Virus record (IMG/VR): IMGVR_UViG_3300043446_005562
Coordinates: 124,001-188,000 of that record
Length of the DNA stretch: 64,000 nucleotides
Reading direction: 5' to 3' (one strand)
In this document: positions 20,507 to 47,995 of the stretch, piece by piece
How positions within the stretch are numbered: position 1 is the first letter of the stretch
Layout: the number at the start of each line of letters is the position of its first letter
The notes under the pieces: model-generated
What the model was told of the DNA's origin: nothing
The model's database searches: none
The model's input: only the letters and a program-made list of their open reading frames with translations
Position numbers and translations under genes: made by a program

Positions 20507-20863
20507 ATGATACAGGAAATTTTAACCAATAGCTTGGGTTGGCCAGGCCGAATGATATCCGGTAGTAAAAGCGGATATCGTAATACTAATCCAAAAAACT
20601 TTGCAATTTTCAATGCAAATATTTGTACTAGAGCAGGTAAAGTTTGGTTTGGCGACATTGATCTCACTTTACAAAAAGCCAAGCTACAGGAGATTGCCCA
20701 GAGCCTAAATGAAACTCTGTACGTGCTTTATGAAATGGATGCGCGTTTTGAAAATGAGAATTCTCCACTACTTGAAAAGGCTGCCGCTACTTTTCTACCA
20801 GACGGCACAGTTGAAGTAAAACCAGATTTAGTACAATATATTGATAAAAGCTTTTTTGAATGA
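20507..20863 (+). CDS. Hypothetical protein
   Basis: 118-aa ORF; ATGA overlap with the polymerase gene. Confidence 0.6.
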   Translation: MIQEILTNSLGWPGRMISGSKSGYRNTNPKNFAIFNANICTRAGKVWFGDIDLTLQKAKLQEIAQSLNETLYVLYEMDARFENENSPLLEKAAATFLPDGTVEVKPDLVQYIDKSFFE

Positions 20864-22251
20864 TAGTAAGCACAGAATTTAACGGACAAGACTCCACGCT
20901 AGTTGTTTCATATTATGATGAGACTGGTAATATTGCATTTGTAAAAAAACCAATACAGCAAGCAGATCTTTTTAACTGGGCAACCACGCCAAATCCAACT
21001 GAATTTAGAAATTGGGATAACCGATTTCTTAAAAAGGTTCCAAACAAGTGGTTGAGCCGATTTAGGCTTGAAGAATTGACGCAAAGCCGCCTTAACCAAT
21101 CTGAACTAGATTTGATCTATTCGGATCTTAGTCCAAAGAAATACTATCTAGATATTGAGATTCAATTAACTTCTCAAGAATTTCCGGATCCAGCAAAAGC
21201 CTTAATGCCGGTCAATCTAATTACATTTGTTAATGAAGATAACGTATGCTTCATCATGTCAACCATGAAAGATCTGCAGCCAACAGTAATGAAGCAAATG
21301 GAGTCCGAGGTCAATGACTATTTCAAAGCTCACAATCAAACATTTACACTTAAATATCTTTTCTTTGAGAAAGAAGAAGATTTAATGGCAACGTTTTTTC
21401 ACAAAGTTCTTCCAAAAATTCCATTCTTAACTGGCTGGAATGTAATTGGTTTTGACTGGATCTATTTGATAAATCGTTGCAAGCGTTTAAACATTGATCC
21501 AATGGAAACCATGCCGTGCAGCAAATTAATCGGTCAATCAAAAATGCCAGTGCACTTAGGTTTGCTCGATTACATGGAAGTTTTCATGAATACCAAGCCT
21601 TATAAAGTAGTTGAAAATTACAAGCTCGACTATATTGCAAATCTAGTATTGGGTACAACTAAATTACACAGCGAATACGCAACAATGATGGAAGCTCAGC
21701 AAGACATTGAGAACTTCGTCAAGTACAACGTGATTGATACAATTCTAGTCAAACTACTAGAAGACAAACTTGGTCTACTTGATGTTGCCTTTGCAATTTC
21801 AAAATTTGCGAAAGTCGACGTGTCAAAAGTATTCTCAGCAGTATTCATTACCGAAACTCTGATGTGTCGTGAATTCTTAGAGCGCGGCCGTTTTATGGCA
21901 AATGACAAGCGTGATATTGAAAGCGAAGCGACCTATGATGGCGCGTATGTTGCAAAACCTGAACCCGGATATTATAAGTACGTTTCATGTTTCGACTTTG
22001 CATCAATGTATCCAAACATTCAGATTCAATTTAACATTTCGCCAGATGCCTATATGGGTAAAAAGAAGTCAGATTCGCAACTTACCCCGGAAACTATCTT
22101 GACAAAAAATGATACAATATTTACAAAGAAGTTTGATTCGGCAGCTCGAACCATTTTAACAAGATTATACAATGGTCGTGTTGAAACCAAAGGTCAAATG
22201 AAAAAACTAGAAGAACAACTTCAAAGTGAAAAAAATACTAAAAAAGCTTAA
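20860..22251 (+). CDS. gp43: Family B DNA polymerase, N-terminal subunit (exonuclease + motif A); split gp43A-like
   Basis: YLDIE (ExoI), TGWNVIGFDW (ExoII), YKLDYIA, YNVIDT (ExoIII), YDGAYV, FDFASMYP (motif A); ends in the first fingers helix, with no KxxxNSxYG or YGDTDS. Confidence 0.88.
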   Translation: MIVSTEFNGQDSTLVVSYYDETGNIAFVKKPIQQADLFNWATTPNPTEFRNWDNRFLKKVPNKWLSRFRLEELTQSRLNQSELDLIYSDLSPKKYYLDIEIQLTSQEFPDPAKALMPVNLITFVNEDNVCFIMSTMKDLQPTVMKQMESEVNDYFKAHNQTFTLKYLFFEKEEDLMATFFHKVLPKIPFLTGWNVIGFDWIYLINRCKRLNIDPMETMPCSKLIGQSKMPVHLGLLDYMEVFMNTKPYKVVENYKLDYIANLVLGTTKLHSEYATMMEAQQDIENFVKYNVIDTILVKLLEDKLGLLDVAFAISKFAKVDVSKVFSAVFITETLMCREFLERGRFMANDKRDIESEATYDGAYVAKPEPGYYKYVSCFDFASMYPNIQIQFNISPDAYMGKKKSDSQLTPETILTKNDTIFTKKFDSAARTILTRLYNGRVETKGQMKKLEEQLQSEKNTKKA

Positions 22252-22261
22252 GAAAATTATT

Positions 22262-22897
22262 ATGGGTTACGATATAGATGCTCTTATTGCTGTCAAGGAC
22301 AGTTTTCAGGGAAACAACTTTCAATGGATAAAAACAAACGATCGTTCCAAACTTGGAAAGGTGGTTAGAGTGGTTGATGTTGCCCCAGGCAGAAATGGCT
22401 ACATTGCAAAATTATCAGACGGTTCAACCATTCCAACCGATCAATTGACCAGCAATTTAATGATGTTGATGGATGATCAGCCAGCGCTAAGCATGGAAGA
22501 GGTAATGTCAATCAATTATGTGCCTGGTCTTGACGGTGAAGTCAAAGTTGCTGAAACAATCCCAGCTGATTTTAAAGAAGAAATTTTATCGCAGCCTGGA
22601 CCCAAGGCCCAACCTGTTGCAGCTGCTCCTCAGCAAAAATCTCAAGCTGATCCGGGAGATCTATTTGGCATGTTTTCTCTTGAGGATACTGACATGACCC
22701 TAACAGTTTCAGTTAAATTACCTGCAAAGAATCTATTAAAAATGATGTATTCTAACTCGCAGGATCAGGATCAATTCTTAAATCGATTGGCCAGCTATAT
22801 AAATAATAGTGTTACGCCTGATTCAATTAAAGACTCCTTAAAAAAGTCATTGGGTCAAGATAAAAAGAAGAAAACTGATGTACCTTCAGCCCAATAA
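22262..22897 (+). CDS. Hypothetical protein
   Basis: ORF in operon, likely start MGYDID; no polymerase motifs. Confidence 0.6.
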   Translation: MGYDIDALIAVKDSFQGNNFQWIKTNDRSKLGKVVRVVDVAPGRNGYIAKLSDGSTIPTDQLTSNLMMLMDDQPALSMEEVMSINYVPGLDGEVKVAETIPADFKEEILSQPGPKAQPVAAAPQQKSQADPGDLFGMFSLEDTDMTLTVSVKLPAKNLLKMMYSNSQDQDQFLNRLASYINNSVTPDSIKDSLKKSLGQDKKKKTDVPSAQ

Positions 22898-23465
22898 GAT
22901 AAACAAGAGCACTTCTCAATTATTAAATGGAGATTTTGATCTGGTCTCATTGACTCGAGACTCACAAAAGCTTGATAAACTTACCTGCAAGCTCAATTAT
23001 ATTGCAATTTTACCGTTTGAAAGAACTGCAGACGACAGAATTAAAGCAGTGTACGGCTTAAAATTTGAAAATCATGCAACTGGGCAGACCGATACAAGTT
23101 TATTAATTGATATAGTTGATCCAACCAAGGATCAGACCCCATTTGATACAGTTTGTAGAGCTCTACTCGAAGAAGCTGGCGTAAATGTTGAAGAGCTTGG
23201 CGTTGATGAAAATGACATTTTTTATCTGGGCACAATTTCAACCACAACCCCCGTTAATTCTAAATTCAAATGTTATGCAGTTGACCTAACTAATGCTGCA
23301 AACCCGGAGTCCCCAATCGAGTTCGCAAGAACTCTTTCCAAGTCCAATTTTGACAAGGACTCCTCAGAAATAGTTAAAATTGGCTTTCATCAAGTCGTAA
23401 ATGGCGACTTCACCGACTCAACCATTCTTGCCGGCTCATTTTTATTGGTTTCATATTTTAATTGA
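22878..23465 (+). CDS. Nudix-fold protein with degenerate Nudix box
   Basis: IAILPF...TPFDTVCRALLEEAGV...FYLG; TATAAATAA late box at 22798-22806 upstream. Confidence 0.6.
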   Translation: MYLQPNKINKSTSQLLNGDFDLVSLTRDSQKLDKLTCKLNYIAILPFERTADDRIKAVYGLKFENHATGQTDTSLLIDIVDPTKDQTPFDTVCRALLEEAGVNVEELGVDENDIFYLGTISTTTPVNSKFKCYAVDLTNAANPESPIEFARTLSKSNFDKDSSEIVKIGFHQVVNGDFTDSTILAGSFLLVSYFN

Positions 23466-23491
23466 AACTAGGGTAAATCTCAGTGTAAAAG
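23465..23491 (+). promoter_or_regulatory. Early/middle promoter AAAC-N17-TAAAAG
   Basis: Upstream of uvsX; conserved spacing. Confidence 0.55.
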
Positions 23492-23516
23492 AATACTGAA
23501 ATTAAACTCTAATAAA

Positions 23517-24710
23517 ATGGCAAAAACTACAATGGACGCTTTCGCAAAGTTTAACGACTTGCTAGAGAAAAAGGTAAAATCAAAAATTGAAATTCGCGGA
23601 TTTTCGGATATTGAGGAGTACATCCCAACCGGAAACTATTTGTTAAATGCTCAAATGTCGGGCTCTCTATTTGGCGGATACCCAAACACTAGAAGCATTG
23701 GAATCGCTGGTGACTCTGGTGCTGGTAAAACATTCTTGTGCTTAAATGCGGTTCGCGAGCTGCAAAAAAAGGACTACATGGTCATTTACATTGATACCGA
23801 GGGCGCAATTGACTCAACTGACTATGTAAAATTCGGAGTTGATCTAAGCAAATTAAAGTATTTAAGAATGGGTATGATTAGCGAAGTTAAATTCTTTGTT
23901 AATGACCTTATTGAAACAATCAAGGAGAACCCTGGCCTTAAGATTGCTCTTTTTGTTGACTCAGTCGGCATGCTAGACACTGATAAGAGTAAGCGAGATA
24001 TGGAAGCTGGTAAAAATGCAGCTGATATGGGTCTTCGTGCAAAGGAGATGCGCGCACTATTCAAATCTTTGACCCTAGATCTTTCTAACTACAAGGTGCC
24101 TTTTATTTTTACTAATCACACCTATGCGTCAATGGATCAATACACGCCAAAGGGCATGTCAGGCGGAGGCGGTCCAGAATTCTCAGCTTCAATTATTTTG
24201 ATGCTAAGTAAGGGAACTTTACGTGATGAGGCTAAGACAACGACCGGCATCATTGTTAGATCTAAAACCAAAAAGAATCGTCTTGCCAAACCTATCGATA
24301 TTGAATTTCACATTTCATTTCATAAAGGTATGAATCCATTCGTTGGACTAGAGCAATACGTGAATTGGGAAAACTGTGGAGTTGGTCGCGGTAATAAATT
24401 GACCGAAAAAGAATTTTTAAAGCTTAAGTCAGATGAGTCTGAACTGTGCTCAAAATTTGAAGTAAACGGCGAAACTTTTTATTTTCTACCTAAAAAATTA
24501 GGTAAAACCTATATCATTAGACACAATGGAGACGCTGTTCCAGTTAAGGAATTCTTTTCAGCTCGACTTTTCACAAATGAGGTCTTGACTGAACTTGATG
24601 AGAAGATTATTAAACCTACTTTTAAATTCCCAGAAACACAAGACGGAATTGACAGTATGGAAACTGACGAATTAGAAGACTTAACCACAAACGAAGAGCA
24701 TGACCTTTAA
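23517..24710 (+). CDS. uvsX: RecA-like recombinase UvsX
   Basis: IPTGNYLLN, GDSGAGKT (Walker A), YIDTE, FVDSVGML, DMGLRAK, FTNHTY, MSGGGG. Confidence 0.93.
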   Translation: MAKTTMDAFAKFNDLLEKKVKSKIEIRGFSDIEEYIPTGNYLLNAQMSGSLFGGYPNTRSIGIAGDSGAGKTFLCLNAVRELQKKDYMVIYIDTEGAIDSTDYVKFGVDLSKLKYLRMGMISEVKFFVNDLIETIKENPGLKIALFVDSVGMLDTDKSKRDMEAGKNAADMGLRAKEMRALFKSLTLDLSNYKVPFIFTNHTYASMDQYTPKGMSGGGGPEFSASIILMLSKGTLRDEAKTTTGIIVRSKTKKNRLAKPIDIEFHISFHKGMNPFVGLEQYVNWENCGVGRGNKLTEKEFLKLKSDESELCSKFEVNGETFYFLPKKLGKTYIIRHNGDAVPVKEFFSARLFTNEVLTELDEKIIKPTFKFPETQDGIDSMETDELEDLTTNEEHDL

Positions 24711-25038
24711 GATACAAGATGGGTTGCCTATTAAATATTCCCTAGCCCTACACCCAGCTCTACCAGGTTATCCAAGCCAGTCTGATTTCATGTTTGATGT
24801 AGCCTCACATATTGTTAGGGTTACTGAATTAAAGTCAAAGGACTGGGCCTCAAACGATATCAAGTTTTCAACAAAAACTCTTAAGTATGTTTTTGGAGAA
24901 CACATGAAATCTGAAACTTTCAAGGAAAAGATCAAGACCATCCTGAAAGACCTACTTGAATCCGGTAAACTAGTAAAAAAAGGCGAATTTATTTTTATAC
25001 CCGAATCCGAATTTTCTAAGTACTATATAATAGCGTAA
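24700..25038 (+). CDS. Hypothetical protein, possible winged-helix
   Basis: C-terminal ILKDLLESGKLVKKGEFIFI resembles a recognition helix plus wing. Confidence 0.5.
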   Translation: MTFKIQDGLPIKYSLALHPALPGYPSQSDFMFDVASHIVRVTELKSKDWASNDIKFSTKTLKYVFGEHMKSETFKEKIKTILKDLLESGKLVKKGEFIFIPESEFSKYYIIA

Positions 25039-25059
25039 ATACACGCTCACCCAAAAACT

Positions 25060-26601
25060 ATGATGATTGATTTTAAAGAAAATATCGAACTCTTAGAGAA
25101 GATAATTTTCAATTTTATTTTGACAGAGGAAGATAATGAAGTCGTAATTAAACCCAAGAATTACGATTCGTTGGACATGAGAGAAATCATCCCAATGGTA
25201 AAGCCTCACTATTTTAATGATGATAATTTACAGAGACTTTATCGTGAAGCTAAAAAATTCTTTCTAGAATACAAGAAAATTCCAACTCGAAATGAATTGA
25301 AACAGCTTGCAAATCTTGCAAATATGGATATCCCGGATGCAAAATTTAATAGCTATTTTGAAGTTGATTTGGGCAGCTATAATTACGATTTCTTATTTAA
25401 GTACACAAAGGCTTTCATCTTTTACAAGAATCTAAATGAGTCCGTAATTGACGTTTTATCGTTTATTAAGACAACCGACGTCAATCCTGAAAACGTTGAG
25501 ATTATAACAAATCAAGTAAGAGAAAAATTTAATGAGAAGCTCAATGTCTCTTTTACAAGCGCAGAGTCTGGTCTAAACTTCTTTAATTCAATAGATCATA
25601 TTCAGTTGAGTAAAATCGGAAATCCAAGTGGCTTTAAATTCTTTGACAAGACTCTAGGCGGAGGTTGGAACCCCAAAACCCTGGTCGTTTTTCAGGGCAG
25701 ACCAAAGGTTGGTAAATCGATGGTGCTCTCGAATATTGCAGGCCGAGCCTTTATTTCGGGCTGTAATGTTGGTATTGCAACTCTTGAGTTATCCGATCGT
25801 AAATACATGAAGCGATTAGGCTCAATGATTCTAGATATTCCATTCAAGGATTACGATTCAATGCTTGAGCCGGGTCATGTTTCTACAGTTGAGGCAAGAA
25901 TGAAGACCTTAAAAGAAACTGTTACAACGCTTGGTGAATTACAAGTAAAGGAATTTCCAACCGGAACAGCAACGGCAATCGATATTGAAAACTATTTCTT
26001 AAAGGTTCAGCAGAACACTGGTAAAAAATTCACAGTAATTGTTGTGGACTACATCAATCTGATGAGACCTATGCGAGAACAGGGCAATACTTATGAAAAG
26101 ATCAAGGTAATTTCTGAGGAGCTTAGGGCCGTTGCAATTCGAAACGAATGGTGCATTATCACAGCAACTCAAATCAAAAGGGACGCGGTTGACGATCAAG
26201 ATCTTAGTATGTCAGACATTGCCGAATCATTTGGTTTAGTTCATACAGTAGATTCTCTATTCGGTCTTATGCGAGGTCCAATGGAGAAGAGAATGAAGAT
26301 TAAACTGATTGCGAATCGAGATGGAGGCTATAATGAAAGTTTCAAAATGTTTCGTATGAGTTATGAATTCGCAAAATTAATTGAGGAAACCGACCCAGCA
26401 TCAGAATTCTATTCAGACGATGATGACACGCAATCATTAGAAAATCAAATGCGTAATCAATATCAAACCGCCGCAACAACTACATTACCTCCAAATTTAA
26501 TTCCGTATGACGTTGCAATTAGCCCAGACTATCCAGTAAAAGAGGCAATTGCGCCAAAACCTTCAACGAATTACGATGACATATTAAACATGATTCAATA
26601 A
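25060..26601 (+). CDS. gp41: Replicative DnaB-like helicase, T4 gp41-like
   Basis: GRPKVGKS, ATLELS, VKEFPTG, IVVDYINLM, ISEELRAVA, TATQIKR, IAESFG. Confidence 0.92.
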   Translation: MMIDFKENIELLEKIIFNFILTEEDNEVVIKPKNYDSLDMREIIPMVKPHYFNDDNLQRLYREAKKFFLEYKKIPTRNELKQLANLANMDIPDAKFNSYFEVDLGSYNYDFLFKYTKAFIFYKNLNESVIDVLSFIKTTDVNPENVEIITNQVREKFNEKLNVSFTSAESGLNFFNSIDHIQLSKIGNPSGFKFFDKTLGGGWNPKTLVVFQGRPKVGKSMVLSNIAGRAFISGCNVGIATLELSDRKYMKRLGSMILDIPFKDYDSMLEPGHVSTVEARMKTLKETVTTLGELQVKEFPTGTATAIDIENYFLKVQQNTGKKFTVIVVDYINLMRPMREQGNTYEKIKVISEELRAVAIRNEWCIITATQIKRDAVDDQDLSMSDIAESFGLVHTVDSLFGLMRGPMEKRMKIKLIANRDGGYNESFKMFRMSYEFAKLIEETDPASEFYSDDDDTQSLENQMRNQYQTAATTTLPPNLIPYDVAISPDYPVKEAIAPKPSTNYDDILNMIQ

Positions 26602-26616
26602 AAAAACCAGCATATT

Positions 26617-27261
26617 TTGAAAAAGAAGAAAAATGAAGAGCTGTTTGAGGATCTAGGATTCGAAGAACAGGATAATTTAGTAGATGATGATTCGGATTTT
26701 GAGCTGTACGACGTTGATGAAGAAGAAGATCCAGCTGAGTTAGAAAGACGTAGAGTTGAATACGCAAAACTTCGTAAGAACGATAAGATATTCAATAACT
26801 CATACAACATGGGTCAAAATCTCTCAGAAGACGAAGAGGATCTCCGGTCAAGTTCTGAAATTAAGTTGGACGTAAGTTCTCCAGACTATCATCTATACGA
26901 TCGAGATCAATACTCAGATCACATGGACAACAAGATAACACAGTACGATATTGATCAATATGTCATGGAATCCAGTGAAATACAGGGAATCTTGGGTGAC
27001 CAGCCGGACAAACGTAAATTCAGCAAAGCTGAGATAAATCAAATATTCATATTGATTTTAAACGGCGTAAGCCGTGGCCAAACCGCTAGCGTGTTCGTAA
27101 GCCCAATTCACGTGTTGGATGCAATTTCTTCCTTAACAACGATGGAATACAAGAAACTTTTTGACATGTTAACGTATGAACATAAAGAGCTACTGCTGCT
27201 GGAACTAAATAAAAAATATGGATTTTTGGACAAGCCTTCTAAAAATCTAAAAATGTTTTAA
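26617..27261 (+). CDS. Hypothetical acidic protein
   Basis: 214-aa ORF (TTG start) between the helicase and gp47. Confidence 0.6.
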   Translation: MKKKKNEELFEDLGFEEQDNLVDDDSDFELYDVDEEEDPAELERRRVEYAKLRKNDKIFNNSYNMGQNLSEDEEDLRSSSEIKLDVSSPDYHLYDRDQYSDHMDNKITQYDIDQYVMESSEIQGILGDQPDKRKFSKAEINQIFILILNGVSRGQTASVFVSPIHVLDAISSLTTMEYKKLFDMLTYEHKELLLLELNKKYGFLDKPSKNLKMF

Positions 27262-27263
27262 TA

Positions 27264-28379
27264 ATGAAATTAGCTAACATTAGAAAAATAAATCTGGTTG
27301 GAGATTTACATCTTGGTATTAGAAATAACTCAGTTGAGTGGTTAGAGATTCAAAAGGACTTTTTAACAGACTTTTTATTTCAAACAATCGATCAGGACTT
27401 TGATGAAGATCGGGACATTTTAATTCTAGAAGGCGATATTTTTCATTCTAGAGAATCAATCAATGTCAGAATTCAGAACGAAGCTTTTGATATTTTTAAA
27501 AAGCTTGCTGCTAAATTTAAACGTGGAGTCTATATCATAATTGGCAACCATGACGTCTACTATAAGGATAAGAATGAAGTTCACTCGCTAAAATCATTAA
27601 GTTACCTATCGGATAATATTCATGTATTTGAAACGCCTGAGGTCTTGACAATAAATGAATCTCATAATTTTTTGATGTTGCCATGGATTGAAGACGTGTC
27701 TAGGCTATCTAATGTAGTAAATGATTACCGTAATATTTGTCAGTATATTGTCTGCCATGCCGATATCAAGGGTTTAAAATTTAACAAGTGGACTCATGTT
27801 GAACATGGTATTGAGATTGATGCGCTTGACTCCTATAAAAGAGTTTGGGGCGGACACATTCACCATCGTCAAGAAAGTCGTAATGTTCTCTATACCGGTA
27901 CTCCATATCAAATGGATCGTGGCGATATGGGCAATGTCAAAGGCTTTTATCAGTTAAGAGTAGACACGCCAGTCTTGACTGAAGAGTTTATAGAAAATAC
28001 TCAGTCTCCAAGCTTTGTTAAATTTGATATTATGAATGTCTTGGAAATGCCATTAGCCGAAATTCAAGAAAAATTCAATAATAATTTTGTTGATCTAATG
28101 ATTAACGTTAATTTTGCAAACAGATTTTCGGTTACCAGATTTCTAGAAGAGATTTCAGATATCCCACACCGCAAAATAGAATTCTTTACCTATGTTGATC
28201 AGACTCAAGCTGAGGCTGAAATGAACTCTGAGTTCAATCCGGAAGAAGGTTTCAATATTACTGATATTTTCAAAATGTACGTCAAGTCTAGAGACTATTC
28301 TCAAGAATTCAAATCGGATTTGGCTCGTAAATTTGTGGAAATCCATCAACTAGTAAAACAAGATAATTCGTATGCCTAA
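27264..28379 (+). CDS. gp47: Recombination nuclease subunit (gp47/Mre11/SbcD)
   Basis: GDLHLG, GDIFH, GNHD and GHIH metallophosphoesterase motifs; YTGTPYQ. Confidence 0.93.
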   Translation: MKLANIRKINLVGDLHLGIRNNSVEWLEIQKDFLTDFLFQTIDQDFDEDRDILILEGDIFHSRESINVRIQNEAFDIFKKLAAKFKRGVYIIIGNHDVYYKDKNEVHSLKSLSYLSDNIHVFETPEVLTINESHNFLMLPWIEDVSRLSNVVNDYRNICQYIVCHADIKGLKFNKWTHVEHGIEIDALDSYKRVWGGHIHHRQESRNVLYTGTPYQMDRGDMGNVKGFYQLRVDTPVLTEEFIENTQSPSFVKFDIMNVLEMPLAEIQEKFNNNFVDLMINVNFANRFSVTRFLEEISDIPHRKIEFFTYVDQTQAEAEMNSEFNPEEGFNITDIFKMYVKSRDYSQEFKSDLARKFVEIHQLVKQDNSYA

Positions 28380-28863
28380 TCAGCCATTTATTAGTAGGAA
28401 CGTTACCATTGTTGAACGTGGTCGATCTCATGTAGCCATTGCGGCTAATGATATTTTAGAAAACACGGTGATTGAAATTTCGCCAGTTGTGATGCTAACT
28501 GCAAAAACCGCAATTTCAATAATCAATAACACTCAAGATTTTGAGAACCGCCTAATTATGGATGAGGCTGCAGTTGATCGAGAATATGAAATCTTTGCAA
28601 GCCTTGGTGAAATGGAACTTGAAAGAAGATTAAACAGCGGTCAAATAAGTCCAGACGAATATCAAAAAATTCTTAGGTCTAAAATAAATCTCAATGCGCT
28701 CATTAATGCAAAAACTCACGCAATGCCTCTTGGTTACGGGCTATTATATGGGATCAGCGATTTCCCAAATTTGGTTAGAGAATATGATTCTGCTCATAAA
28801 CTTTGTTATTATCGAACAGTACAATACATAACAGCAGGCACGGACTTAACCTATTCTAAATAA
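28372..28863 (+). CDS. SET-domain-like protein (degenerate catalytic motifs)
   Basis: AANDILENTVIEISPV ... PLGYGLLYGISDFPN ... YITAGTDLTY follows the bacterial SET pattern (A..DI..G..IE..PV / LGYGSLYNHS..PN / I..GEELT.Y), but NHS is replaced by GIS. Confidence 0.6.
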   Translation: MPNQPFISRNVTIVERGRSHVAIAANDILENTVIEISPVVMLTAKTAISIINNTQDFENRLIMDEAAVDREYEIFASLGEMELERRLNSGQISPDEYQKILRSKINLNALINAKTHAMPLGYGLLYGISDFPNLVREYDSAHKLCYYRTVQYITAGTDLTYSK

Positions 28864-28869
28864 TAGCGA

Positions 28870-30540
28870 ATGAAGATAACTCAATTCTCCTTTAAGAACA
28901 TTTGTTCATACGGCAATAAATTACAAACTTTTAAATTCTCAGACGATCCTCAGCTTGTTCTAGTTCAGGGTAAAAACGGCAGTGGAAAATCTTCTATCTC
29001 TGATGCCCTAACTGTCGCGCTATACGGAAAATCTTCAATCCGAAAAACCAAAGAGATTCCAAATCGAATCAATAAAAATGCCTATACTCATGTTGAATTT
29101 TTGACAGGTTCAGGTGAGGTTATTGAAATTGAAAGAGGTCTTGAGCCGAATTTTTCCAAGCTCTTGATTAATGGATCCGAGCACAATCTTCCCGATAAAA
29201 GAAGAGTCGATGATTTTATTGAAGAAGAATTGACAAAGATTCCATTCAATGTATTTTCAAATACAATTAGCCTGTCGGTAAATGATTTTAAGAGTTTTGT
29301 AAAATTAAGCCCCCATGACAAGCGCCAGATTATTGATAAAATATTTGGACTAGATATCGTAAATGACATGTCCAGAATAAGTAAAGAAGAGGTTCGAGAA
29401 TTAAAGATCTCAATTCAGTCCCTTGACTCAACTATTTTAAATAATGAGGCCATTTTGGAAAATTCCAAAGACCAGCTAAATAACCTAAAGCAGGATCTGT
29501 CTTCAGCTAAAGAGACTAGAATTTCCGAACTTACTCAAGAGATTTCTGAGCTAAGTAGGGTCAAAGAGTCTCATAAAGCCGAGTATACTGGATTCTCATC
29601 TCAACTTCAAGACTTAGAAAAAGCGGTTAATGAAGCAAAGGAGACGCGTACCACAATTCAATTCAATATCTCAGAGATTCAAAAGAAATTAGATCTCTAT
29701 TCCAAGAACAAGTGTCCACACTGTCTATCTGATTTGACCGATGCGGCTCACTTGAATATCAAAGAGAAACTTTCAAATAAAAAAGAGGAGCAAGCCAGCT
29801 TATTACCTGAGACTGCCGTAAAGATTCAGGATGCAATCCATATTTTGGATAAGGCAAAGGCCGCACAGAGCGCAGCTAGAGACAAATATTTTCAAATAGA
29901 CGGGCTCTTAGCTCCACTAAAAAAGGAATTATCTGACCTGTCAACAACGGACGTTACCACCCAACAGTCGGGAACAGAATACATAAACGGGGTAATTGAA
30001 TCAATAGAGAATGAAATTTCAGACCTAAATTCAAAGCGTGCAAAATTAATGAGTCAGCTCTCAATTTCACAAGAAATGGAAGATATTTTATCTGACAACG
30101 GTATGAAACGTTTGTTAATGAGCCAAATCATTCCAATGTTGAATAAAAAGATCTTAAAGACTTCAAAGCTATTGGAATTCAAATTCGCATTCGAATTTGA
30201 TCTTGAATTCAATCCAATCATTACTCATTTGGGCATGCAGATTTCACCAGATTCACTTTCAGCCGGAGAGCAGAAAAAAATGAATTTGATTGTTTTGCTC
30301 TGTATTCTAGAGCTTTTAAAATTAAAACATCACAAGGTCAATTTATTGTTTCTGGATGAAGTATTTTCATCACTAGACGTTGAATCCATCTATAGAGTGG
30401 TGGATTTATTGAAAACTTTTGCTAAAAAGTACAATATGACGGTCTTTGTAATTTCACACGATCCTCTACCTGAAGAGTTTTTCGATACAAAATTGATGGT
30501 TGAGAACACTGATCACTTCTCCGACATTAAGATTCTGTAA
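28870..30540 (+). CDS. gp46: Recombination ATPase subunit (gp46/Rad50/SbcC)
   Basis: GKNGSGKS, coiled coil with CPHC zinc hook, LSAGE signature, LFLDE, VISH. Confidence 0.94.
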   Translation: MKITQFSFKNICSYGNKLQTFKFSDDPQLVLVQGKNGSGKSSISDALTVALYGKSSIRKTKEIPNRINKNAYTHVEFLTGSGEVIEIERGLEPNFSKLLINGSEHNLPDKRRVDDFIEEELTKIPFNVFSNTISLSVNDFKSFVKLSPHDKRQIIDKIFGLDIVNDMSRISKEEVRELKISIQSLDSTILNNEAILENSKDQLNNLKQDLSSAKETRISELTQEISELSRVKESHKAEYTGFSSQLQDLEKAVNEAKETRTTIQFNISEIQKKLDLYSKNKCPHCLSDLTDAAHLNIKEKLSNKKEEQASLLPETAVKIQDAIHILDKAKAAQSAARDKYFQIDGLLAPLKKELSDLSTTDVTTQQSGTEYINGVIESIENEISDLNSKRAKLMSQLSISQEMEDILSDNGMKRLLMSQIIPMLNKKILKTSKLLEFKFAFEFDLEFNPIITHLGMQISPDSLSAGEQKKMNLIVLLCILELLKLKHHKVNLLFLDEVFSSLDVESIYRVVDLLKTFAKKYNMTVFVISHDPLPEEFFDTKLMVENTDHFSDIKIL

Positions 30541-30565
30541 ACTATTTTCATTTTTTTAGTATATT
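30539..30565 (+). promoter_or_regulatory. Early/middle promoter AAAC-N17-TATATT
   Basis: Immediately upstream of the ATG at 30572 (near-leaderless mRNA). Confidence 0.6.
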
Positions 30566-30571
30566 TTATTT

Positions 30572-31453
30572 ATGATAGTATTTAAAGGCCAGACTTTTGC
30601 AGACTGTTATCGTGATTCATTGATTCACTTATTCAATGAAGGCGCTGAAAACAATGCAAGAGGAACTGTTAGTAAAGAATTATTGGATGTTGCGCTAGTC
30701 GTTGAAGATCCAACTCAGTGCCTGTATCAAAACGACAAGCGAGGCTCTCAAATCAAATACATTGCTGCCGAATTTTTATGGTATTACTCGGGCCGAAATG
30801 ATGTAAAATTCATCTCTAACTGGGCTAAGTTTTGGGAGACTATTCAAAATGAAGACGGTACTGCTAATTCAGCATACGGCAATCTAATTTTTAGGGTTAA
30901 AAATCAGCATAATGTTTCCCAATATCAGTGGGCAATGCAGAGCCTTATTTCAGATGCCAACACTCGACAAGCTGTGATGCATTTCAATATGCCAACTCAT
31001 CAATATTCTGGCAATAAGGATTTTGTTTGTACAATGTATGCAAATTGTCACATTCGAAACAATAAATTCTATATGTCAGTTTACATGAGAAGCAACGATG
31101 CCGTTTGGGGTACACCAACCGACGTTGCCTTTTTCTGTTCTTTACAAATGCAGATGTTTGCTCAATTAAAGAGCTTTTATCCGGACTTGGAATTGGGTAG
31201 CTATACTCACGTTGCAAATTCATATCATGTCTACGATCGTCATTATGAATTGGGTCAAGCCATGTTGCAATCAGAATTCAAAGCTGACTCGCTACCGTCA
31301 ATCGTTGCTGATCTAGTTGATGTTGATGGAACTCCAAGCAGAAATTTACTCATCTTAATGGATGCATTAGAAGCAGATGACGAGCCGTATTTGATTTTCC
31401 AAGACGGTGACGATCTATTGAAATGGATTCATAAAAACATTACAAAGAAATGA
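30572..31453 (+). CDS. Thymidylate synthase-family enzyme, probable dCMP hydroxymethylase/methylase (T4 gp42-like)
   Basis: NSAYG, TRQA, DFVCT (catalytic Cys), MRSNDAVWGTPTD with Asp at the dCMP/dUMP specificity position, SYHVYDRH. Confidence 0.8.
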   Translation: MIVFKGQTFADCYRDSLIHLFNEGAENNARGTVSKELLDVALVVEDPTQCLYQNDKRGSQIKYIAAEFLWYYSGRNDVKFISNWAKFWETIQNEDGTANSAYGNLIFRVKNQHNVSQYQWAMQSLISDANTRQAVMHFNMPTHQYSGNKDFVCTMYANCHIRNNKFYMSVYMRSNDAVWGTPTDVAFFCSLQMQMFAQLKSFYPDLELGSYTHVANSYHVYDRHYELGQAMLQSEFKADSLPSIVADLVDVDGTPSRNLLILMDALEADDEPYLIFQDGDDLLKWIHKNITKK

Positions 31454-31908
31454 TAACGTCTAAACAGCATAAAATTGACGTTGCGTATATCAAAATGGCT
31501 CAAGTTTGGGCAGAACTCTCTCATGCAACTCGTAAAAAAGTTGGCGCTCTAATTGTAAAAAACAACACAATCATTTCAGATGGATTTAATGGAACCCCCT
31601 CGGGTTTTGAAAATGAATGTGAAGAGGCTGTGTGTAATGACGATGGCTCATTTAGGGAATACAAAACAAAATGGTATGTTTTGCATGCCGAGTCAAATGC
31701 CTTAGCTAAGGTTGCTAAATCAACTCAAAGTAGCGAGGGCGCAACTCTCTATATTACCTATTCACCATGTACGGATTGCAGTAAATTAATTTTACAGGCC
31801 GGTATCAAACGCGTTGTCTATCTAGAAGAATACCGCGATACCAATGGATTAGACTTTTTAAGAAGAGCTGGTGTAGAGATCAAAAAAATCAGCCTAGATA
31901 ATGATTGA
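31450..31908 (+). CDS. cd: dCMP deaminase
   Basis: KVGALIV, GFNGTPSG, HAESNA, SPCTDC zinc motifs. Confidence 0.95.
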   Translation: MITSKQHKIDVAYIKMAQVWAELSHATRKKVGALIVKNNTIISDGFNGTPSGFENECEEAVCNDDGSFREYKTKWYVLHAESNALAKVAKSTQSSEGATLYITYSPCTDCSKLILQAGIKRVVYLEEYRDTNGLDFLRRAGVEIKKISLDND

Positions 31909-32299
31909 TAGCAATCGAACTCTTGAGATAGTTTTTGTAAAAGACCAAAAGCAATTTGTCCATGTACTTCAAAAGAAGTGCAAATCTGACTATTTACTCA
32001 ATGTCAACAAAATCATTCGTGAGAAATTTGAGCAGGACATTTTGGTGCCCAATAAGATCCAATCTTTTTTAATAAACTATGAAATTAAGAAATTGATTGA
32101 CAAGGCAGTTAACGTCAGAAACCGAAAATACAATAGAATAATTTACGTTAATTCAAGTCTTTCCGCGAATACTGTTCTAAATACAATAGATTTTCTATCG
32201 AGCGCATACGACGGAGTTAAATTTAGTCCATTAATAATTGATTTAGAAGAGGAATTTTGTAAGGGCCTAAAGATTAAGACAATAAAAAAGGGGCGTTAA
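31901..32299 (+). CDS. Hypothetical protein
   Basis: 132-aa ORF ending at the terminator. Confidence 0.55.
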   Translation: MIDSNRTLEIVFVKDQKQFVHVLQKKCKSDYLLNVNKIIREKFEQDILVPNKIQSFLINYEIKKLIDKAVNVRNRKYNRIIYVNSSLSANTVLNTIDFLSSAYDGVKFSPLIIDLEEEFCKGLKIKTIKKGR

Positions 32300-32307
32300 G
32301 CCCCTTT
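32284..32307. terminator. Terminator at the convergence of the + and - blocks
   Basis: AAAAAAGGGGC-gttaa-GCCCCTTT. Confidence 0.8.
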
Positions 32308-32330
32308 AAAGTATCAAAAGATCAATAAGA

Positions 32331-32975
32331 TTAAACTTCCTCGTTTTGCTCTTCGTCTTCTAATGGCTTTTTACTTTCGTCAGCCATTTTTTCAGAGTCT
32401 TCTTCCTCTTCTTCGGTCTTGCACATCTTTTCGATTGCTGCGCATAATAGATCGCAAACTTCTTCTTTTTCAAGTTCCATCTTTTCGCAAATATTATCAA
32501 TCATTTCTTGAAGATCATCTCCGAATTCTTCAGTTAATTGTTCAAGTAATTCCTCGTCTACTTCGTATCCGAGTTCAACATTTTCGTCATTTTCTAGAGG
32601 TTCTTCAGCTTCATTAAATTCATAGCCGTAGTTTTCATTTACGAATTCTTCGTATCTAGCAATTTTGCCTTCTTCGACTGCTTCTACTGTTGCAATGGTT
32701 GGTTTAGCGTACATTTGTGTATAAGGTTTTTTCTTTGCTGTTCTGTAAACGATATCGCTTGAAAAACCTTTCCAAGCAGAATCATAATTTGGATTGAAAC
32801 GCCCGCCTTCAGCATTGGGGTCGCGCTCAACAATTCTTTGATATCCATCAAGAGATTTTCTCTTTGATTTATCAAAATCTTCTTTTTCAGAAGGACCACC
32901 AAACGCAGGCTTCTTTAAATTAGTCCATCTGTCTAGTGAAGGATTATCTCTGCGTTTTATGTTAAACATGTCCAT
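32331..32975 (-). CDS. Hypothetical late protein (basic N-half, acidic C-half), putative head-internal
   Basis: Follows the tail tube gene; internal KIARYEEFVNE motif. Confidence 0.6.
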   Translation of the reverse strand: MDMFNIKRRDNPSLDRWTNLKKPAFGGPSEKEDFDKSKRKSLDGYQRIVERDPNAEGGRFNPNYDSAWKGFSSDIVYRTAKKKPYTQMYAKPTIATVEAVEEGKIARYEEFVNENYGYEFNEAEEPLENDENVELGYEVDEELLEQLTEEFGDDLQEMIDNICEKMELEKEEVCDLLCAAIEKMCKTEEEEEDSEKMADESKKPLEDEEQNEEV

Positions 32976-32992
32976 GTCTTACTTTAATATTT

Positions 32993-33595
32993 TTATTGAC
33001 CAACTCGAGTTTCAACGTAACGATCTGCTACGAATCCAATAGTAAGATCCGCAATCTTATCGTCAGCGTAACTAAGAGTTTGTTCAGTGAATTTATCCAT
33101 ATCTAAGAAAACTGGTGAAAATACAAATTCCCTAAAGATTACACCTGAACGATTGAATTGAGTTACTTGAACCACTGCTGGATTTGCAACGGTACCTGCA
33201 TAATCTTTCTTTAATCCTTGAGCGCCTGTCATTGGATCATAAATCAAATTAGACCAAGCACGGAATGCATTGTAAATGTAATTATCGTTATCGTCGTTTA
33301 AGTTTAATTCGAATGCAATCTTGAATTTAGCTAAAGTAGTTTGAGGTTTAGCTGCAGCATAAGCTCTTTCAGAGAATTTGAATCTTTGAGTTTGAAGAGC
33401 TCCTCCAGCATTACCGTGAAGTTCTGGAAGTCCCGTAACGGTTTTAACATGCTCTAGAGTTAGATTATTGTTAAATCCAATTTTTCCCGAAACTGCAGGT
33501 GGCGGAGTAATAATTACTTCAAACTGATTTAAGTAAATCGGTTCATATCTTCCAGGACCTGCTGTTGAATTTTTAAAATGTGGTAGACCAGCCAT
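32993..33595 (-). CDS. gp19: Tail tube protein (gp19-like)
   Basis: YLNQFEVII, FRAWSNLIYDPMTG, KKDYAG, VTQFNRSG, LSY, FVADRY; late box at 33615-33623. Confidence 0.85.
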   Translation of the reverse strand: MAGLPHFKNSTAGPGRYEPIYLNQFEVIITPPPAVSGKIGFNNNLTLEHVKTVTGLPELHGNAGGALQTQRFKFSERAYAAAKPQTTLAKFKIAFELNLNDDNDNYIYNAFRAWSNLIYDPMTGAQGLKKDYAGTVANPAVVQVTQFNRSGVIFREFVFSPVFLDMDKFTEQTLSYADDKIADLTIGFVADRYVETRVGQ

Positions 33596-33638
33596 CTTGT
33601 CTTATTTTTTTAGTTTATTTATTCGAGGTATTCTCAGT

Positions 33639-34535
33639 TTATTTTGGAGAGCTTGCCAGTTTTGCTTCAGATTCTTTACGAATTTCATCTCTAACCTCTA
33701 TAAATTCGCGTTCCTTTGCGCCGCTGCCTTTTAAATCTTTAAGGGCTTTGATCAACCAGTCTTCGTCCTCCTGTTCTTTACCGCTTGGCACGACTGTATT
33801 GTCTCCAGGAATAAAGGTTAATTCAATTGATGGAATTACCTGAACCAGCAGATTCGATCCATCTTCTGTTTCAAATTCTCTAAGTCCCAACTCAATAGTT
33901 TCTCCCAGTAAACCTGGCAGTTTAACTAGCGCTTTGATTTTTGAAGAATTATCAACAGTTTCATCACCAACTGCCTTTGTTATGTTGTTAGACATTCTAT
34001 AAGAAATGGTTACTCCACTGCCTCTTTGTGATTGAACATCAATCAATCTAACTCTATCTGCTATAACGGTAACTGTGTACTCCCGGGGTTCACCAGATTC
34101 TTTGGGCTCATCTTTCTTGGGTTCATCATTAACTACTTCATCCTCCAAGTTAGGGCTCTCTGGTTCATCCTGAGACTTATCAGAGATCGTTGCCGGTAAT
34201 CCGGGTTTTTGTGATACGGCTGGTAAATTTGACGAAGGCTCTGAGCCAGCCGGCAGAGCCAGCGTTTCATTAGTCGGCTTTGCCCCAATTAATTTTGAAT
34301 CAATAATTGAGTTAATATCCTTTAATAGACTAATTAGTTTTTCAGCAGATGAGTACTTGTAATATGTTGCTAATGCACTGGCCTGTTTGTAGTCAAGATC
34401 CGGATAGAGATCGGTCGTGTGAAGTTCAATGTATTGCGCATTTTGGTCCCAAATAGGCTGTTCGCCTGCACCAGGATTATTCCAAGTTATCTTGAAACTT
34501 GCATAAGATTCTGCAATTACACCGTCTCCAACCAT
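33639..34535 (-). CDS. Hypothetical late protein
   Basis: 298-aa ORF downstream of the capsid cluster. Confidence 0.6.
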   Translation of the reverse strand: MVGDGVIAESYASFKITWNNPGAGEQPIWDQNAQYIELHTTDLYPDLDYKQASALATYYKYSSAEKLISLLKDINSIIDSKLIGAKPTNETLALPAGSEPSSNLPAVSQKPGLPATISDKSQDEPESPNLEDEVVNDEPKKDEPKESGEPREYTVTVIADRVRLIDVQSQRGSGVTISYRMSNNITKAVGDETVDNSSKIKALVKLPGLLGETIELGLREFETEDGSNLLVQVIPSIELTFIPGDNTVVPSGKEQEDEDWLIKALKDLKGSGAKEREFIEVRDEIRKESEAKLASSPK

Positions 34536-34538
34536 TTA

Positions 34539-35042
34539 TTATCCGATTTCTTTATCACCACGAAATTCTTTTCCGCGGTTTGATTTTTTCTTGTCTGGGT
34601 CAACTGGTTTGTAATTAGCCCAAATTTCATTGTAAATACGGCAAGATGCGCCCATGAAATTAACAATGCCGACGTATTTCTTACGATCGTCACCTTTCAT
34701 TTTTGAAATTCTTTTGCCAATTGTGCGAGCATCATCCAAATCCAATTCTTCATCATCCGACTTTCCAACTAAATCCTTTAGTGAATTTGTTTCAGTCACG
34801 TAAGATTCAAAGGTTGGATGCACATGAGGGCCATGTGGACCCATTGGATCCAAGTCAGTATCTTCTGATTCAAGATCAGCAGATCCGCCCATTCTTTCTA
34901 TTTGAGCAAGGCCTTCTTCCTGAGAGTTTACTGGAATTAAAGTATTTCGACCAACGACATAGTAGCCGTCTTCTCTTTCTTCAATTCTAAGTGGACCCGA
35001 CAGATCGAATTCCATGCCATCACTAAACTTAAGTTTTGACAT
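34539..35042 (-). CDS. Hypothetical late protein with internal CTS-like motif
   Basis: HPTFESYVTET separates two small domains. Confidence 0.6.
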   Translation of the reverse strand: MSKLKFSDGMEFDLSGPLRIEEREDGYYVVGRNTLIPVNSQEEGLAQIERMGGSADLESEDTDLDPMGPHGPHVHPTFESYVTETNSLKDLVGKSDDEELDLDDARTIGKRISKMKGDDRKKYVGIVNFMGASCRIYNEIWANYKPVDPDKKKSNRGKEFRGDKEIG

Positions 35043-35053
35043 GTTAATTTGAT

Positions 35054-35413
35054 TTATTTAGGCATCTTTGCCATAGAAGGATCAACCTTCTTGTTAAGGG
35101 CTTTTCCTTTGATAACTAATTTAGAAATCTTTGGATCAACTTCTTTTTTAGAAGCAGTTCCGCGACCCTTTGGCAAATCAGCAATACCGGTTTTTACCAT
35201 TTTCTTAGGCTCAGAACCACGACCCTTTGGCAAATCTGCCATTTCAGGTTTAACAGTTTTGCTGATAGACTTGCCCTTTCCAGCAGGAAGGTCAGAAGTT
35301 TCATCATCAACTTGTTTGGTGATCTTTTTACCTTTAGCAGGAGCACCCTTAGAAAGATCTTGATTCATTTTCTTTTCGAAAAGATACTCTTCGTAGCTTA
35401 AAACTGATTTCAT
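35054..35413 (-). CDS. Lys-rich repeat protein with CTS-like leader; putative DNA-condensing internal protein
   Basis: MKSVLSYEEYLFEKK, then 19-aa repeats around DLP(K/A)G(R/K)G; late box at 35459-35467. Confidence 0.7.
   Translation of the reverse strand: MKSVLSYEEYLFEKKMNQDLSKGAPAKGKKITKQVDDETSDLPAGKGKSISKTVKPEMADLPKGRGSEPKKMVKTGIADLPKGRGTASKKEVDPKISKLVIKGKALNKKVDPSMAKMPK
35164..35300 (-). repeat. 57-bp period coding repeat (DLPKGRG units)
   Basis: GACCCTTTGGCAAATC at 35164 and 35221, with a diverged third copy near 35275. Confidence 0.75.
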
Positions 35414-35481
35414 GTGAACTTTGTTTTTTTAAATATTTTTTTGCTAATCCTAGCTAGGTTATTTATTAGCGAATCTTTACT

Positions 35482-35515
35482 AAAAAAGAAAAGGCTCCCT
35501 TTTGAGGAGCCTTTT
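35482..35515 (-). terminator. Intrinsic terminator after the major capsid gene
   Basis: AAAAGGCTCC...GGAGCCTTTT stem with a T-rich tail on the - strand. Confidence 0.85.
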
Positions 35516-35537
35516 ACTATGATTAACCTAGTTAAGA

Positions 35538-37250
35538 TTAATATGCAGTTGAAGGAGCTACAGAACCTGTCAATACTCCTAGTCCTGTTACAGACATTGT
35601 GATGTATTGAGTTTCTGGGTGCCATCCTGCTTCTGTAATAGCATAACGAGATTTCATACCTAATTTTGGAGAGAAAGTACCCTCTGCGATAGTTTGAAGA
35701 CTCTCAGCCATGATATATGGAAGGAATTTAACACCTGGTTCTTCATCAGCACCTTTACGACCGATGTGGATACGGTTATCAGTGAACTTCAAGTTAGGAT
35801 CAACGTATACAGTTAGACCGTGTACTTTACCAGCTGGGTAAAGTTGGCCAGGACCTGAAGGAAGATCGTTATTGAATGGAGCGAAAGAATAACCAGCAAC
35901 ATCAGCAAGAGCTGAAGCTACACGACCGTTAGTAACGATGTATGTACCAGCACCGAAACGACCTCTGTGATAAATCAAGTTAGCCATTTCAAGGATTTTA
36001 GTAACAACACGACGTTGTAGAGTTGAGATGTTTTCGAAACCAGAACCTACAGTAAGATCTAAAGTAGTGATTCCTGAACCTTCAACTGAGTTAACGCTAG
36101 TTGCGTGAGTAGCACCTAAGTTCAATACTCTGTCAACTAATTTTTTGTTGATACCTTGTGCAAGTTCGTTAACCGCAACGTTTTCCAACATAGAGATTAC
36201 GTCGAAATTCCAAACACGGTTAAGATCTTGGATTTGCTCAACAGTTGCAGAGATTGCTACTTGGTCACCTTTTGCTTCGATGAACTTAGTGAACATACGA
36301 AGACCCATTTGACGGAATTTAGAAACTTCAGCAACTTCACGTTTCATACCGTCGAAGTTAACTTGCGAACCGTTTGAACCTAAGAAAGGACCATCGAATG
36401 CAGTTGAAGCATAGTCAGAATCGCTTACTGAAGTGAAACCTGAAATGTGATTTTCTAGAGCAGATACTAAAGTAGCTGTCATACCGTTAGCACCACCGAA
36501 ACCTTTCCAAGGTTCAGCTGAAGTACCAGCAGCAGAGTTACCTGTATCGGTACGTGAACCTGTGTAAGTAACGTTATCAAGAGCAGCAACTGCGTCAGCT
36601 ACAGTAGTAGTAGATGAATCAGTAGTACCACCTTGGATTACTTTTAGGATAGGTAAACCGTCGATACGAGATTTTCCAACGTATTGGAATTTGAAAGCAG
36701 CGCCAGTGTTACCAGTATCACCTTGGATATAGTCACCAATTGTAATACCTGCATTAAGAGCAGAAGACAATTTAACCATATAAGGTTCGTACTGAGTATC
36801 TAAGTTACCACCTTGGTATACGTAGTCCAAGTAAGGTAAGAAACCTACTGGAGAATCCATAGGAACTACACCAACTAGGTCGAAACCGATAGTTTTAGCA
36901 GCTACTTGGATAGCTACTGGAAGAAGGCTTGGGAATTTATCACCAGAACCAGATACAGAAGCACCGTAACCATTTTTTACACCAGCTGTGAATGGTGTCA
37001 TTGAGCTAGTTGGAGCAGAGATTGCACCAATTGAGCTGATAGAACCAGGTTGTTGTAAGAACAAACCAGGAGCTGAACCTGAAGCCAAAGCTTCGTTCAA
37101 TGAGCCTGCGTTATCGAAGATAGCGTGGTTGTGAGCGTAGTCAACTAACCAAGGGCGAGCTTTGATGTCTGCACCGTAACCTTCTAATACTGGAGCCCAA
37201 GTTTCAGTAACTGAAGCGTCATTCAGTCTTTTGAAAATTTTTGTTGCCAT
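35538..37250 (-). CDS. gp23: Major capsid protein (gp23-like)
   Basis: TWAPVLEG, IGFDLVGVVPM, TVEQIQDL, ELAQGINK, GRFGAGTYIV, FLPYI, TFSPKLGMKSRYA; SLNEA probable maturation site; strongly biased codons; TATAAATAA late box at 37389-37397. Confidence 0.93.
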   Translation of the reverse strand: MATKIFKRLNDASVTETWAPVLEGYGADIKARPWLVDYAHNHAIFDNAGSLNEALASGSAPGLFLQQPGSISSIGAISAPTSSMTPFTAGVKNGYGASVSGSGDKFPSLLPVAIQVAAKTIGFDLVGVVPMDSPVGFLPYLDYVYQGGNLDTQYEPYMVKLSSALNAGITIGDYIQGDTGNTGAAFKFQYVGKSRIDGLPILKVIQGGTTDSSTTTVADAVAALDNVTYTGSRTDTGNSAAGTSAEPWKGFGGANGMTATLVSALENHISGFTSVSDSDYASTAFDGPFLGSNGSQVNFDGMKREVAEVSKFRQMGLRMFTKFIEAKGDQVAISATVEQIQDLNRVWNFDVISMLENVAVNELAQGINKKLVDRVLNLGATHATSVNSVEGSGITTLDLTVGSGFENISTLQRRVVTKILEMANLIYHRGRFGAGTYIVTNGRVASALADVAGYSFAPFNNDLPSGPGQLYPAGKVHGLTVYVDPNLKFTDNRIHIGRKGADEEPGVKFLPYIMAESLQTIAEGTFSPKLGMKSRYAITEAGWHPETQYITMSVTGLGVLTGSVAPSTAY

Positions 37251-37267
37251 TTTATTAAAATGTTTTT

Positions 37268-39250: not shown

Positions 39251-39315
39251 CTTTGTAAGACTTTTTTATTATTTATATAGCGATCTATCTGCTAAAATAG
39301 ATGGCTATACTAACA

Positions 39316-40194: not shown

Positions 40195-40224
40195 AATAGA
40201 TAGATCTAAACCGGTCTTTCTAGT

Positions 40225-40251
40225 ATAATACTACGATATCGGCTCGAGTTT
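40225..40251 (-). promoter_or_regulatory. Early/middle promoter AAAC-N17-TATTAT for dnaJ
   Basis: Same motif and spacing on the - strand; overlaps a + strand TATAAT (40224-40229) facing the glycosylation island. Confidence 0.6.
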
Positions 40252-40281
40252 ATAAAGAACCGTTATAAAAAATCCAATTAG

Positions 40282-45118: not shown

Positions 45119-45121
45119 TAA

Positions 45122-46746: not shown

Positions 46747-46778
46747 ACTCTATTTTATACTCTAGATTTATTGATTGG

Positions 46779-47993: not shown

Positions 47994-47995
47994 TT

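Follow-up and report, generated by a model that had tools for sequence, protein, structure and literature searches.

The replicative family-B DNA polymerase (PolB) of a freshwater jumbo phage is very probably a non-covalent assembly of two polypeptides, as judged from modelling of the complex and from analogy with known split enzymes. The two halves, encoded in different gene clusters, are intact, single-copy, conserved and complementary to each other. Their physical association and activity are what we infer from the model and from three analogous systems, gp43A/B of phage 44RR, DNAP N+C of phage PhiKZ and the split Pfu polymerase. The source record (G000) is 252,618 bp in length with a CheckV completeness of 93%, and the stretch of DNA analysed here, hereafter called the window, is the 64-kb segment corresponding to its bases 124001-188000. 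The phage is a jumbo phage from freshwater with a T4-like portal and a contractile tail, and near-identical DNA is found in metagenomes of freshwater, lake, reservoir, estuary and river (12 studies). The window codes for a 1012-aa tail sheath, the major head protein, the prohead protease, baseplate proteins and a cluster of replication/recombination genes.

Identification of the N-terminal half of PolB

The gene for the N-terminal half (N-half) encodes the N-terminal domain, the 3'-5' exonuclease, the beginning of the palm, where motif A is located, and the first fingers helix (Table 1). The initial annotation had described this open reading frame as a family-B polymerase carrying the exonuclease motifs and motif A and ending with TAA after the first fingers helix, and the Pfam matches, the motifs and the alignment with RB69 gp43 all agree with this description. 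In the Pfam search, DNA_pol_B_exo1 (PF03104) was detected at residues 97-215 with 40.8 bits against a cut-off of 23, and DNA_pol_B (PF00136) at residues 332-454, above the curated cut-off and corresponding to profile positions 16-145 of 453, which make up the first third of the polymerase domain. The family-B exonuclease signature is complete, including Exo I (DxE), Exo II (Nx2-3FD) and Exo III (Yx3D). Motif A provides one of the two catalytic aspartates of the polymerase. The alignment with RB69 gp43 extends over RB69 residues 107-491, the last of which lies within the fingers domain. Neither motif B nor motif C was detected in the window by a six-frame regular-expression scan, as had been noted for its open reading frames in the initial annotation.

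Contigs from river metatranscriptome libraries (X15, X16) match window positions 20621-21086, 21160-21331 and 21697-21847 at 99-100% identity. Matches of these contigs fall on parts of the N-half gene and on the ORFs after it, and none spans the stop codon. These RNA-library matches are compatible with expression in nature, DNA carry-over being another possible source.

Table 1. Position of the two polymerase genes, the motifs of the N-half and the neighbouring genes (window positions unless otherwise indicated)
Feature	Position	Strand	Basis or remark
118-aa ORF upstream of N-half	20507..20863	+	no Pfam or PHROG match
PolB N-half gene	20860..22251	+	intact ORF, 463 aa, ATG start, stop TAA 22249-22251
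Exo I motif LDIEI, residues 97-101	21148..21162	+	from translation; RB69 exonuclease-domain alignment
Exo II motif WNVIGFDWIYL, residues 193-203	21436..21468	+	from translation; RB69 alignment
Exo III motif YNVIDT, residues 289-294	21724..21741	+	from translation; RB69 alignment
Polymerase motif A DFASMYP, residues 379-385	21994..22014	+	from translation; RB69 alignment
First fingers helix (helix N equivalent), includes RLYNGRVETKGQMK	22144-22221	+	read from sequence
First fingers helix and short variable tail, chain end at fingertip	22144..22248	+	RB69 alignment, sequence
Two ORFs after N-half	22226-22897, 22878-23465	+	no PHROG/Pfam match
Spacer between the polymerase genes (46,378 bp in all), first 41.7 kb	22252..64000		
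UvsX/RecA-like recombinase	23517-24710	+	annotation
DnaB-like helicase	25060-26601	+	annotation
SbcD-like nuclease	27264-28379	+	annotation
SbcC-like nuclease	28870-30540	+	annotation
Thymidylate synthase, dCMP deaminase	within spacer	+	annotation
Major head protein	35538-37250	-	annotation
Prohead protease	37268-39250	-	annotation
Baseplate genes	within spacer	-	annotation
PolB C-half gene, 485 aa	G000:C1:192630-194087 (window position 68630-70087)	+	PF00136 scan of record
Same C-half gene in extracted loci	L001:1498-2955; L089:6630-8087		

Authenticity of the stop codon

A stop codon in the middle of a polymerase might be an artefact of assembly or sequencing, or might be recoded and read through, and an alternative code is indeed used by related Lak megaphages (PMC7824862). 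Against both of these possibilities, the codon is TAA, and not TAG or TGA, and the coding density of the window is high under table 11. Recoding of TAA is not known from phages. An independent DNA run from another sample and another study (X3) gave a single 8.7-kb contig across positions 20500-23500, in which a total of 14 substitutions, none of them at the N-half stop, and no indels were found, and with this the assembly break at 22251 that had been considered in the initial annotation is removed. Furthermore, in all of the 58 related IMG/VR loci whose 3' end is complete, the reading frame terminates 0-7 residues from the N-half end point, and 29 different tail sequences are present at the N-half end among the related IMG/VR loci. 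The frame beyond the stop contains no PolB sequence, and the missing part, encoded at a distance of 46 kb, begins with an ATG of its own, the position of which is conserved. The artefact is effectively refuted already, and its probability is negligible.

Identification of the C-terminal half outside the window

Screening of the whole record with PF00136 identified exactly two places, the N-half and a second one outside the window. The latter is an ORF with motifs B and C, and encodes the C-terminal half (C-half) of 485 aa. It is located downstream of the N-half on the same strand after a gap of 46,378 bp, beginning 4,630 bp past the right end of the window; the palm/thumb half had been predicted to lie at least about 20 kb away. 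The C-half contains motif B (KILINSFYGAFG), motif C (YTDTDS), the KKKY motif and the thumb, starts 19 residues before motif B, and aligns to RB69 residues 559-750.

The matches to PF00136 are tiled, with profile positions 16-145 on the N-half followed by 144-450 on the C-half, the junction being at 144/145. The polymerase motifs A (DxxSLYP), B (KxxxNSxYG) and C (YxDTDS) are complete once both halves are combined, and the summed length of 948 aa, compared with 903 for RB69, leaves no unassigned domain. Between the conserved Lys of helix N and the Lys of motif B, 19 + 19 residues are found on the two chains, compared with 37 in the single-chain enzyme of cyanophage S-SCSM1. As read from these sequences, the fingertip is complete across the two halves, with nothing missing and nothing added.

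PolA (PF00476) is absent from the record and Pol III alpha (PF07733) gave no match above the cut-off. No DNA polymerase other than the two halves was detected in the 252.6-kb record, and the alternative of a full-length polymerase elsewhere with a decaying N-half, raised in the initial annotation, is made very unlikely by the presence of only two PF00136 places and by the strong purifying selection described below. A single sub-threshold match to Pol III alpha (13 bits, E 0.008) was observed at window 29419-29691 within the SbcC-like ORF and is probably due to chance; a split minimal Pol III alpha has been reported in related jumbo phages (PMC7824862). The gp45 sliding clamp profiles PF09116 and PF02916 gave no match in the genome by Pfam, from which divergent clamps may escape.

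Gene organization around the two halves

The N-half gene belongs to a plus-strand cluster together with the genes for NTP pyrophosphohydrolase, UvsX/RecA, DnaB-type helicase, SbcCD, thymidylate synthase and dCMP deaminase. The TGA of the preceding 118-aa ORF overlaps the ATG of the N-half as ATGA, suggesting that the N-half is translationally coupled to this ORF within a replication operon. The ORF after the N-half starts within about 10-25 nt of its stop codon. No accessory subunit can be named among the ORFs flanking the N-half, for which PHROG and Pfam were both blank.

The clusters of the N-half and the C-half are separated by minus-strand head and baseplate genes. The C-half is preceded by three minus-strand ORFs and then a spacer of 66 nt, and therefore needs its own promoter. 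On its 3' side, the C-half overlaps by 11 nt with a primase gene (phrog_47, E 1e-29), and a UvsW-like helicase gene upstream and the T4-like portal gene further downstream are also found around it. Since the halves are located in distinct clusters and the C-half stands behind minus-strand ORFs, co-transcription of the two does not take place. Separate regulation of the halves, proposed in the initial annotation, is no more than a possibility; both clusters are replication modules. Directly after the primase gene, a gene for a TnsA-like endonuclease (PF08722, E 7e-21) was found at L089:9207-9713 (G000:C1:195207-195713), which may represent a selfish nuclease in the replication module.

Conservation of the two halves in relatives

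By word-based searches at E <= 1e-10, 451 N-half-like and 786 C-half-like protein clusters were obtained, the lengths of which are tightly distributed (about 457-478 aa for N-half-like and 473-545 aa for C-half-like proteins). Five near-complete relatives retain both the order of the two halves and their location on one strand, with distances of 38.6-50.4 kb. In comparison with the closest relative (G002), pN/pS was 0.037/0.606 for the N-half and 0.075/0.745 for the C-half, and dN/dS of the N-half was about 0.03. Both halves are under strong purifying selection.

From the separation by 46 kb into different gene clusters, one might suppose that the halves no longer cooperate, the N-half serving by itself as an exonuclease for proofreading or being a remnant in decay, and that the phage is replicated by another polymerase of host or phage origin; at about 93% completeness of the record, such a gene could be missing. 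This is very unlikely, however, as all three polymerase motifs, A on the first half and B and C on the second, are intact and conserved, both halves are under the selection described above, no other polymerase was detected in the record, and the halves co-occur in all six of the long family records and in four distant records as well.

In tblastn searches against GenBank phages, the top matches were huge phages (LR7565xx, LR745206), Lak megaphages and Chryseobacterium phages MA9V-1/2, and all those examined among these phages are split at one and the same point of the structure. The distance between the halves varies widely, being 1.6 kb in a relative on a metagenome contig (L095), where one 524-aa Mom-like gene lies between them, 3.6 kb in MA9V-2, with a TnpB gene inside the gap, 10.5 kb in LR756500, about 101 kb in LR745206, about 133 kb in LR756502, 221 kb in Lak-A2 and 281 kb in LR756504. 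Among these relatives, the halves are on opposite strands whenever the gap is at least 100 kb. The MA9V-2 gene (L073 / OR513085.1 153006-154172) codes for a TnpB-family RNA-guided endonuclease.

An exhaustive search for the N-half was performed with no length filter, and the best 150 representatives were inspected. Most of them, with a length of 447-580 aa, terminate at the fingertip; the others are chiefly single chains of 744-980 aa, besides a few shorter fragments. A FastTree phylogeny of 152 N-terminal regions (representatives at 50% identity), rooted by T4-like enzymes only, placed 147 rows in one jumbo/megaphage clade with support 100, in which 120 split and 27 single-chain enzymes are interspersed, that is, a split share of about 80% of the clade representatives. 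The 8-row subclade holding the protein of the window is all split. The state changed 20 times within the clade by parsimony, of which at least 14 changes are forced by well-supported branches, fission and re-fusion being counted alike.

Predicted structure of the two-chain enzyme

In the proposed enzyme, the N-subunit (463 aa) has the exonuclease for proofreading, and with it motif A and the first fingers helix. Motif B, on the second fingers helix, and motif C belong to the C-subunit (485 aa), as do the remaining palm and the thumb. The chain break is at the hairpin tip of the fingers, from which it follows that the interface should be composed of the antiparallel finger helices and of a palm beta-sheet shared between the strands of motif A and motif C. 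The active site would be assembled from both chains.

The heterodimer proposed in the initial annotation was predicted with high score. The complex of N-half and C-half gave an ipSAE of 0.84 (median of three runs), and the best of three controls gave 0.00; the ipSAE mark was attained by 51 of 78 solved complexes and by two of 108 mismatched pairs. The runs share at least 95% of contacts, and the partner pLDDT is at least 78. In the model, residues 429-457 of the N-half contact residues 2-30 of the C-half through the finger helices, and the motif A strand of the N-half (369-378) contacts residues 102-107 and 160-169 of the C-half beside motif C. The predicted interface would thus correspond to the reconstituted palm and fingers of PolB, and a palm rebuilt in this way argues further against halves that act apart. 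The model supports binding and is not proof of it, and the score may in part reflect memory of single-chain PolB folds.

The two products might be joined covalently, by means of a split intein of the kind present in Nanoarchaeum PolB or through trans-splicing of intron halves. Phage PolB genes often contain inteins and group I introns, and among the enzymes compared here gp43B of phage Aes508 has both an intein and a group I intron and the C-half of one relative (P0161) has an intein. The split-intein or intron ends that the initial annotation had raised were, however, found at neither half. The 19 residues on either side make up a normal short fingertip and leave no space for intein halves, Pfam detected only PolB domains in both halves and no Hint or intein domain, a search of 7.4 kb around both genes against Rfam at E <= 1 gave no match to introns or RNA families, and the next ORF lies close to the N-half stop. 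Covalent rejoining of the halves is unlikely, extremely so in our estimation, and the non-covalent assembly is the reading adopted below.

The intein of P0161 (719 aa; PF14890) occupies residues 117-282, just past the motif C region, and therefore the polymerase halves are themselves targets of further selfish insertion.

Comparison with known split polymerases

Fingertip splits of T4-like phages and distantly encoded PolB halves of PhiKZ and Methanothermobacter are already known. The gp43A/gp43B split is known for the Aeromonas and Acinetobacter phages 44RR, 25, 31, 65 and 133 (PMC3061061, citing Petrov et al. 2006 and 2010). The parallel with gp43A/gp43B that was drawn in the initial annotation holds for the position of the break but not for the lineage, which is phylogenetically separate, nor for the gene arrangement, the two genes being non-adjacent here. 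As represented by Aes508, the structural break is the same, at the fingertip between the two long finger helices, and as in the present case the N-subunit of about 460-500 aa carries the exonuclease and motif A and the C-subunit carries motifs B and C and the thumb. The T4-like fingertip is, however, about 74 residues, compared with 38 here. The gp43A and gp43B cistrons are adjacent, separated by 2 bp to 3 kb and often with a homing endonuclease gene in between, whereas those described here are 46.4 kb apart in different clusters. The gp43 locus adjoins regA and clamp-loader genes (cf. Aes508, RB14), in contrast to NTP pyrophosphohydrolase/UvsX for the N-half and primase for the C-half. In the trees, the protein of the window is set apart from Aes508, RB14 and Metamorpho in a separate clade with support 100; Aes508 gp43A groups with the unsplit T4-like enzymes (support 99), and the protein of the window belongs to the jumbo/megaphage clade (support 100). 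These sequence comparisons indicate that the fingertip split described here arose independently of the gp43 split of T4-like phages (Straboviridae).

The DNAP-N (gp82) and DNAP-C (gp50) of the chimallivirus PhiKZ associate stably at a ratio of 1:1, and motif A is located on a different chain from motif C (PMC13648687). As in the present case, this is a family-B polymerase of a jumbo phage made from non-adjacent genes. In the PhiKZ enzyme, however, the split falls ahead of the fingers, within a large palm-insertion domain, and the total of 1369 aa includes extra domains (little-finger and palm-insertion); the enzyme described here is split at the fingertip, adds up to 948 aa and has no such additional domain. 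The PolB halves of Methanothermobacter (Mth) and Nanoarchaeum equitans are also encoded far apart (PMC3061061; PMC4104785), as they are here. The break of the Mth enzyme falls in the palm, about 83 residues beyond the Pfu fingertip position towards the C-terminus, in contrast to the fingertip split here, and the Nanoarchaeum halves are joined by a split intein, whereas here there is no intein domain and there are no spare residues at the break.

The split Pfu polymerase (Pfu SQ) regains full activity on reassembly of its fragments and shows wild-type-like behaviour (PMC3061061). Pfu SQ is split near the fingertip as is the enzyme described here, but is artificial, archaeal and bicistronic. By analogy, it is the best functional precedent for how the phage enzyme is expected to work.

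The unannotated split PolB enzymes of the huge phages, Lak megaphages and MA9V-1/2 belong to the same clade and share the same break point. The two ORFs of MA9V-1 were given as separate polymerases with no comment (PMC10537231), and no description of the PolB split in this jumbo/megaphage clade was found in the literature searched, from which both the extent of the split across the clade and the scatter distance of the halves are absent. A truncated-looking polymerase ORF in phage metagenomes may be half of a working enzyme, with the partner located tens to hundreds of kb away. When PolB is used as a single marker gene, annotation pipelines and phylogenies miscount or mis-size the polymerase of this clade, as exemplified by the treatment of the MA9V-1 ORFs. 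The tolerance of the PolB fingertip to interruption, represented before by a few T4-like phages, is extended to a large global group of jumbo phages from freshwater, gut and soil, and natural two-piece polymerases are on offer for enzyme engineering.

Probable origin and possible benefit of the split

In L095, the 524-aa gene (2843-4417), which gave matches to Mom (PF25680) and DUF7487, is located exactly at the fingertip loop, and in the unsplit sister enzyme P0356 the loop is continuous at the point where L095 has the Mom-like gene. At the level of sequence, this sister pair shows how the split would arise. Foreign DNA would be inserted into the fingertip-coding segment of the PolB gene, and a later genome rearrangement would carry the two halves apart. 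Fingertip insertion followed by rearrangement is the likely origin.

It may be speculated that the PolB fingertip is a recurrent site of fission and fusion in the jumbo/megaphage clade (the freshwater family, Lak and Chryseobacterium phages) and that the split, scattered state is kept for its usefulness rather than as a neutral scar of selfish-DNA insertion, but we hold this proposal as a whole to be doubtful. The separation would then be adaptive through differential regulation, wider tolerance to nucleotides such as modified bases, or escape from defences that sense PolB; stated as a benefit, the split state may allow looser nucleotide selection for modified DNA, evasion of PolB defences or control of subunit dosage. 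Such adaptation would be in line with the high proportion of split enzymes in the clade and the repeated changes of state, with the better acceptance of bulky nucleotide analogues by split Pfu (PMC3061061), with the presence of a Mom-like DNA-modification gene in the break of L095, and with the discussion of defences aimed at phage PolB (PMC11348598). Both halves are, however, located in replication modules, so that co-expression is equally likely, and the same pattern is accounted for, with no benefit, if selfish DNA has repeatedly entered a loop that tolerates it. An adaptive value of the separation is, altogether, rather improbable.

Other genes of the window

No tRNA genes were found within the 64-kb window. 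The tail sheath gene (window 16803-19841, minus strand) codes for a protein about twice the usual length, of which only the ends are matched by the standard sheath profiles (phrog_23, phrog_34521). An ORF of 984 aa at window 59476-62430 (minus strand) gave a single RNA-ligase-like match at its N-terminus (phrog_548, residues 23-254), the remaining 730 or so residues being unassigned.
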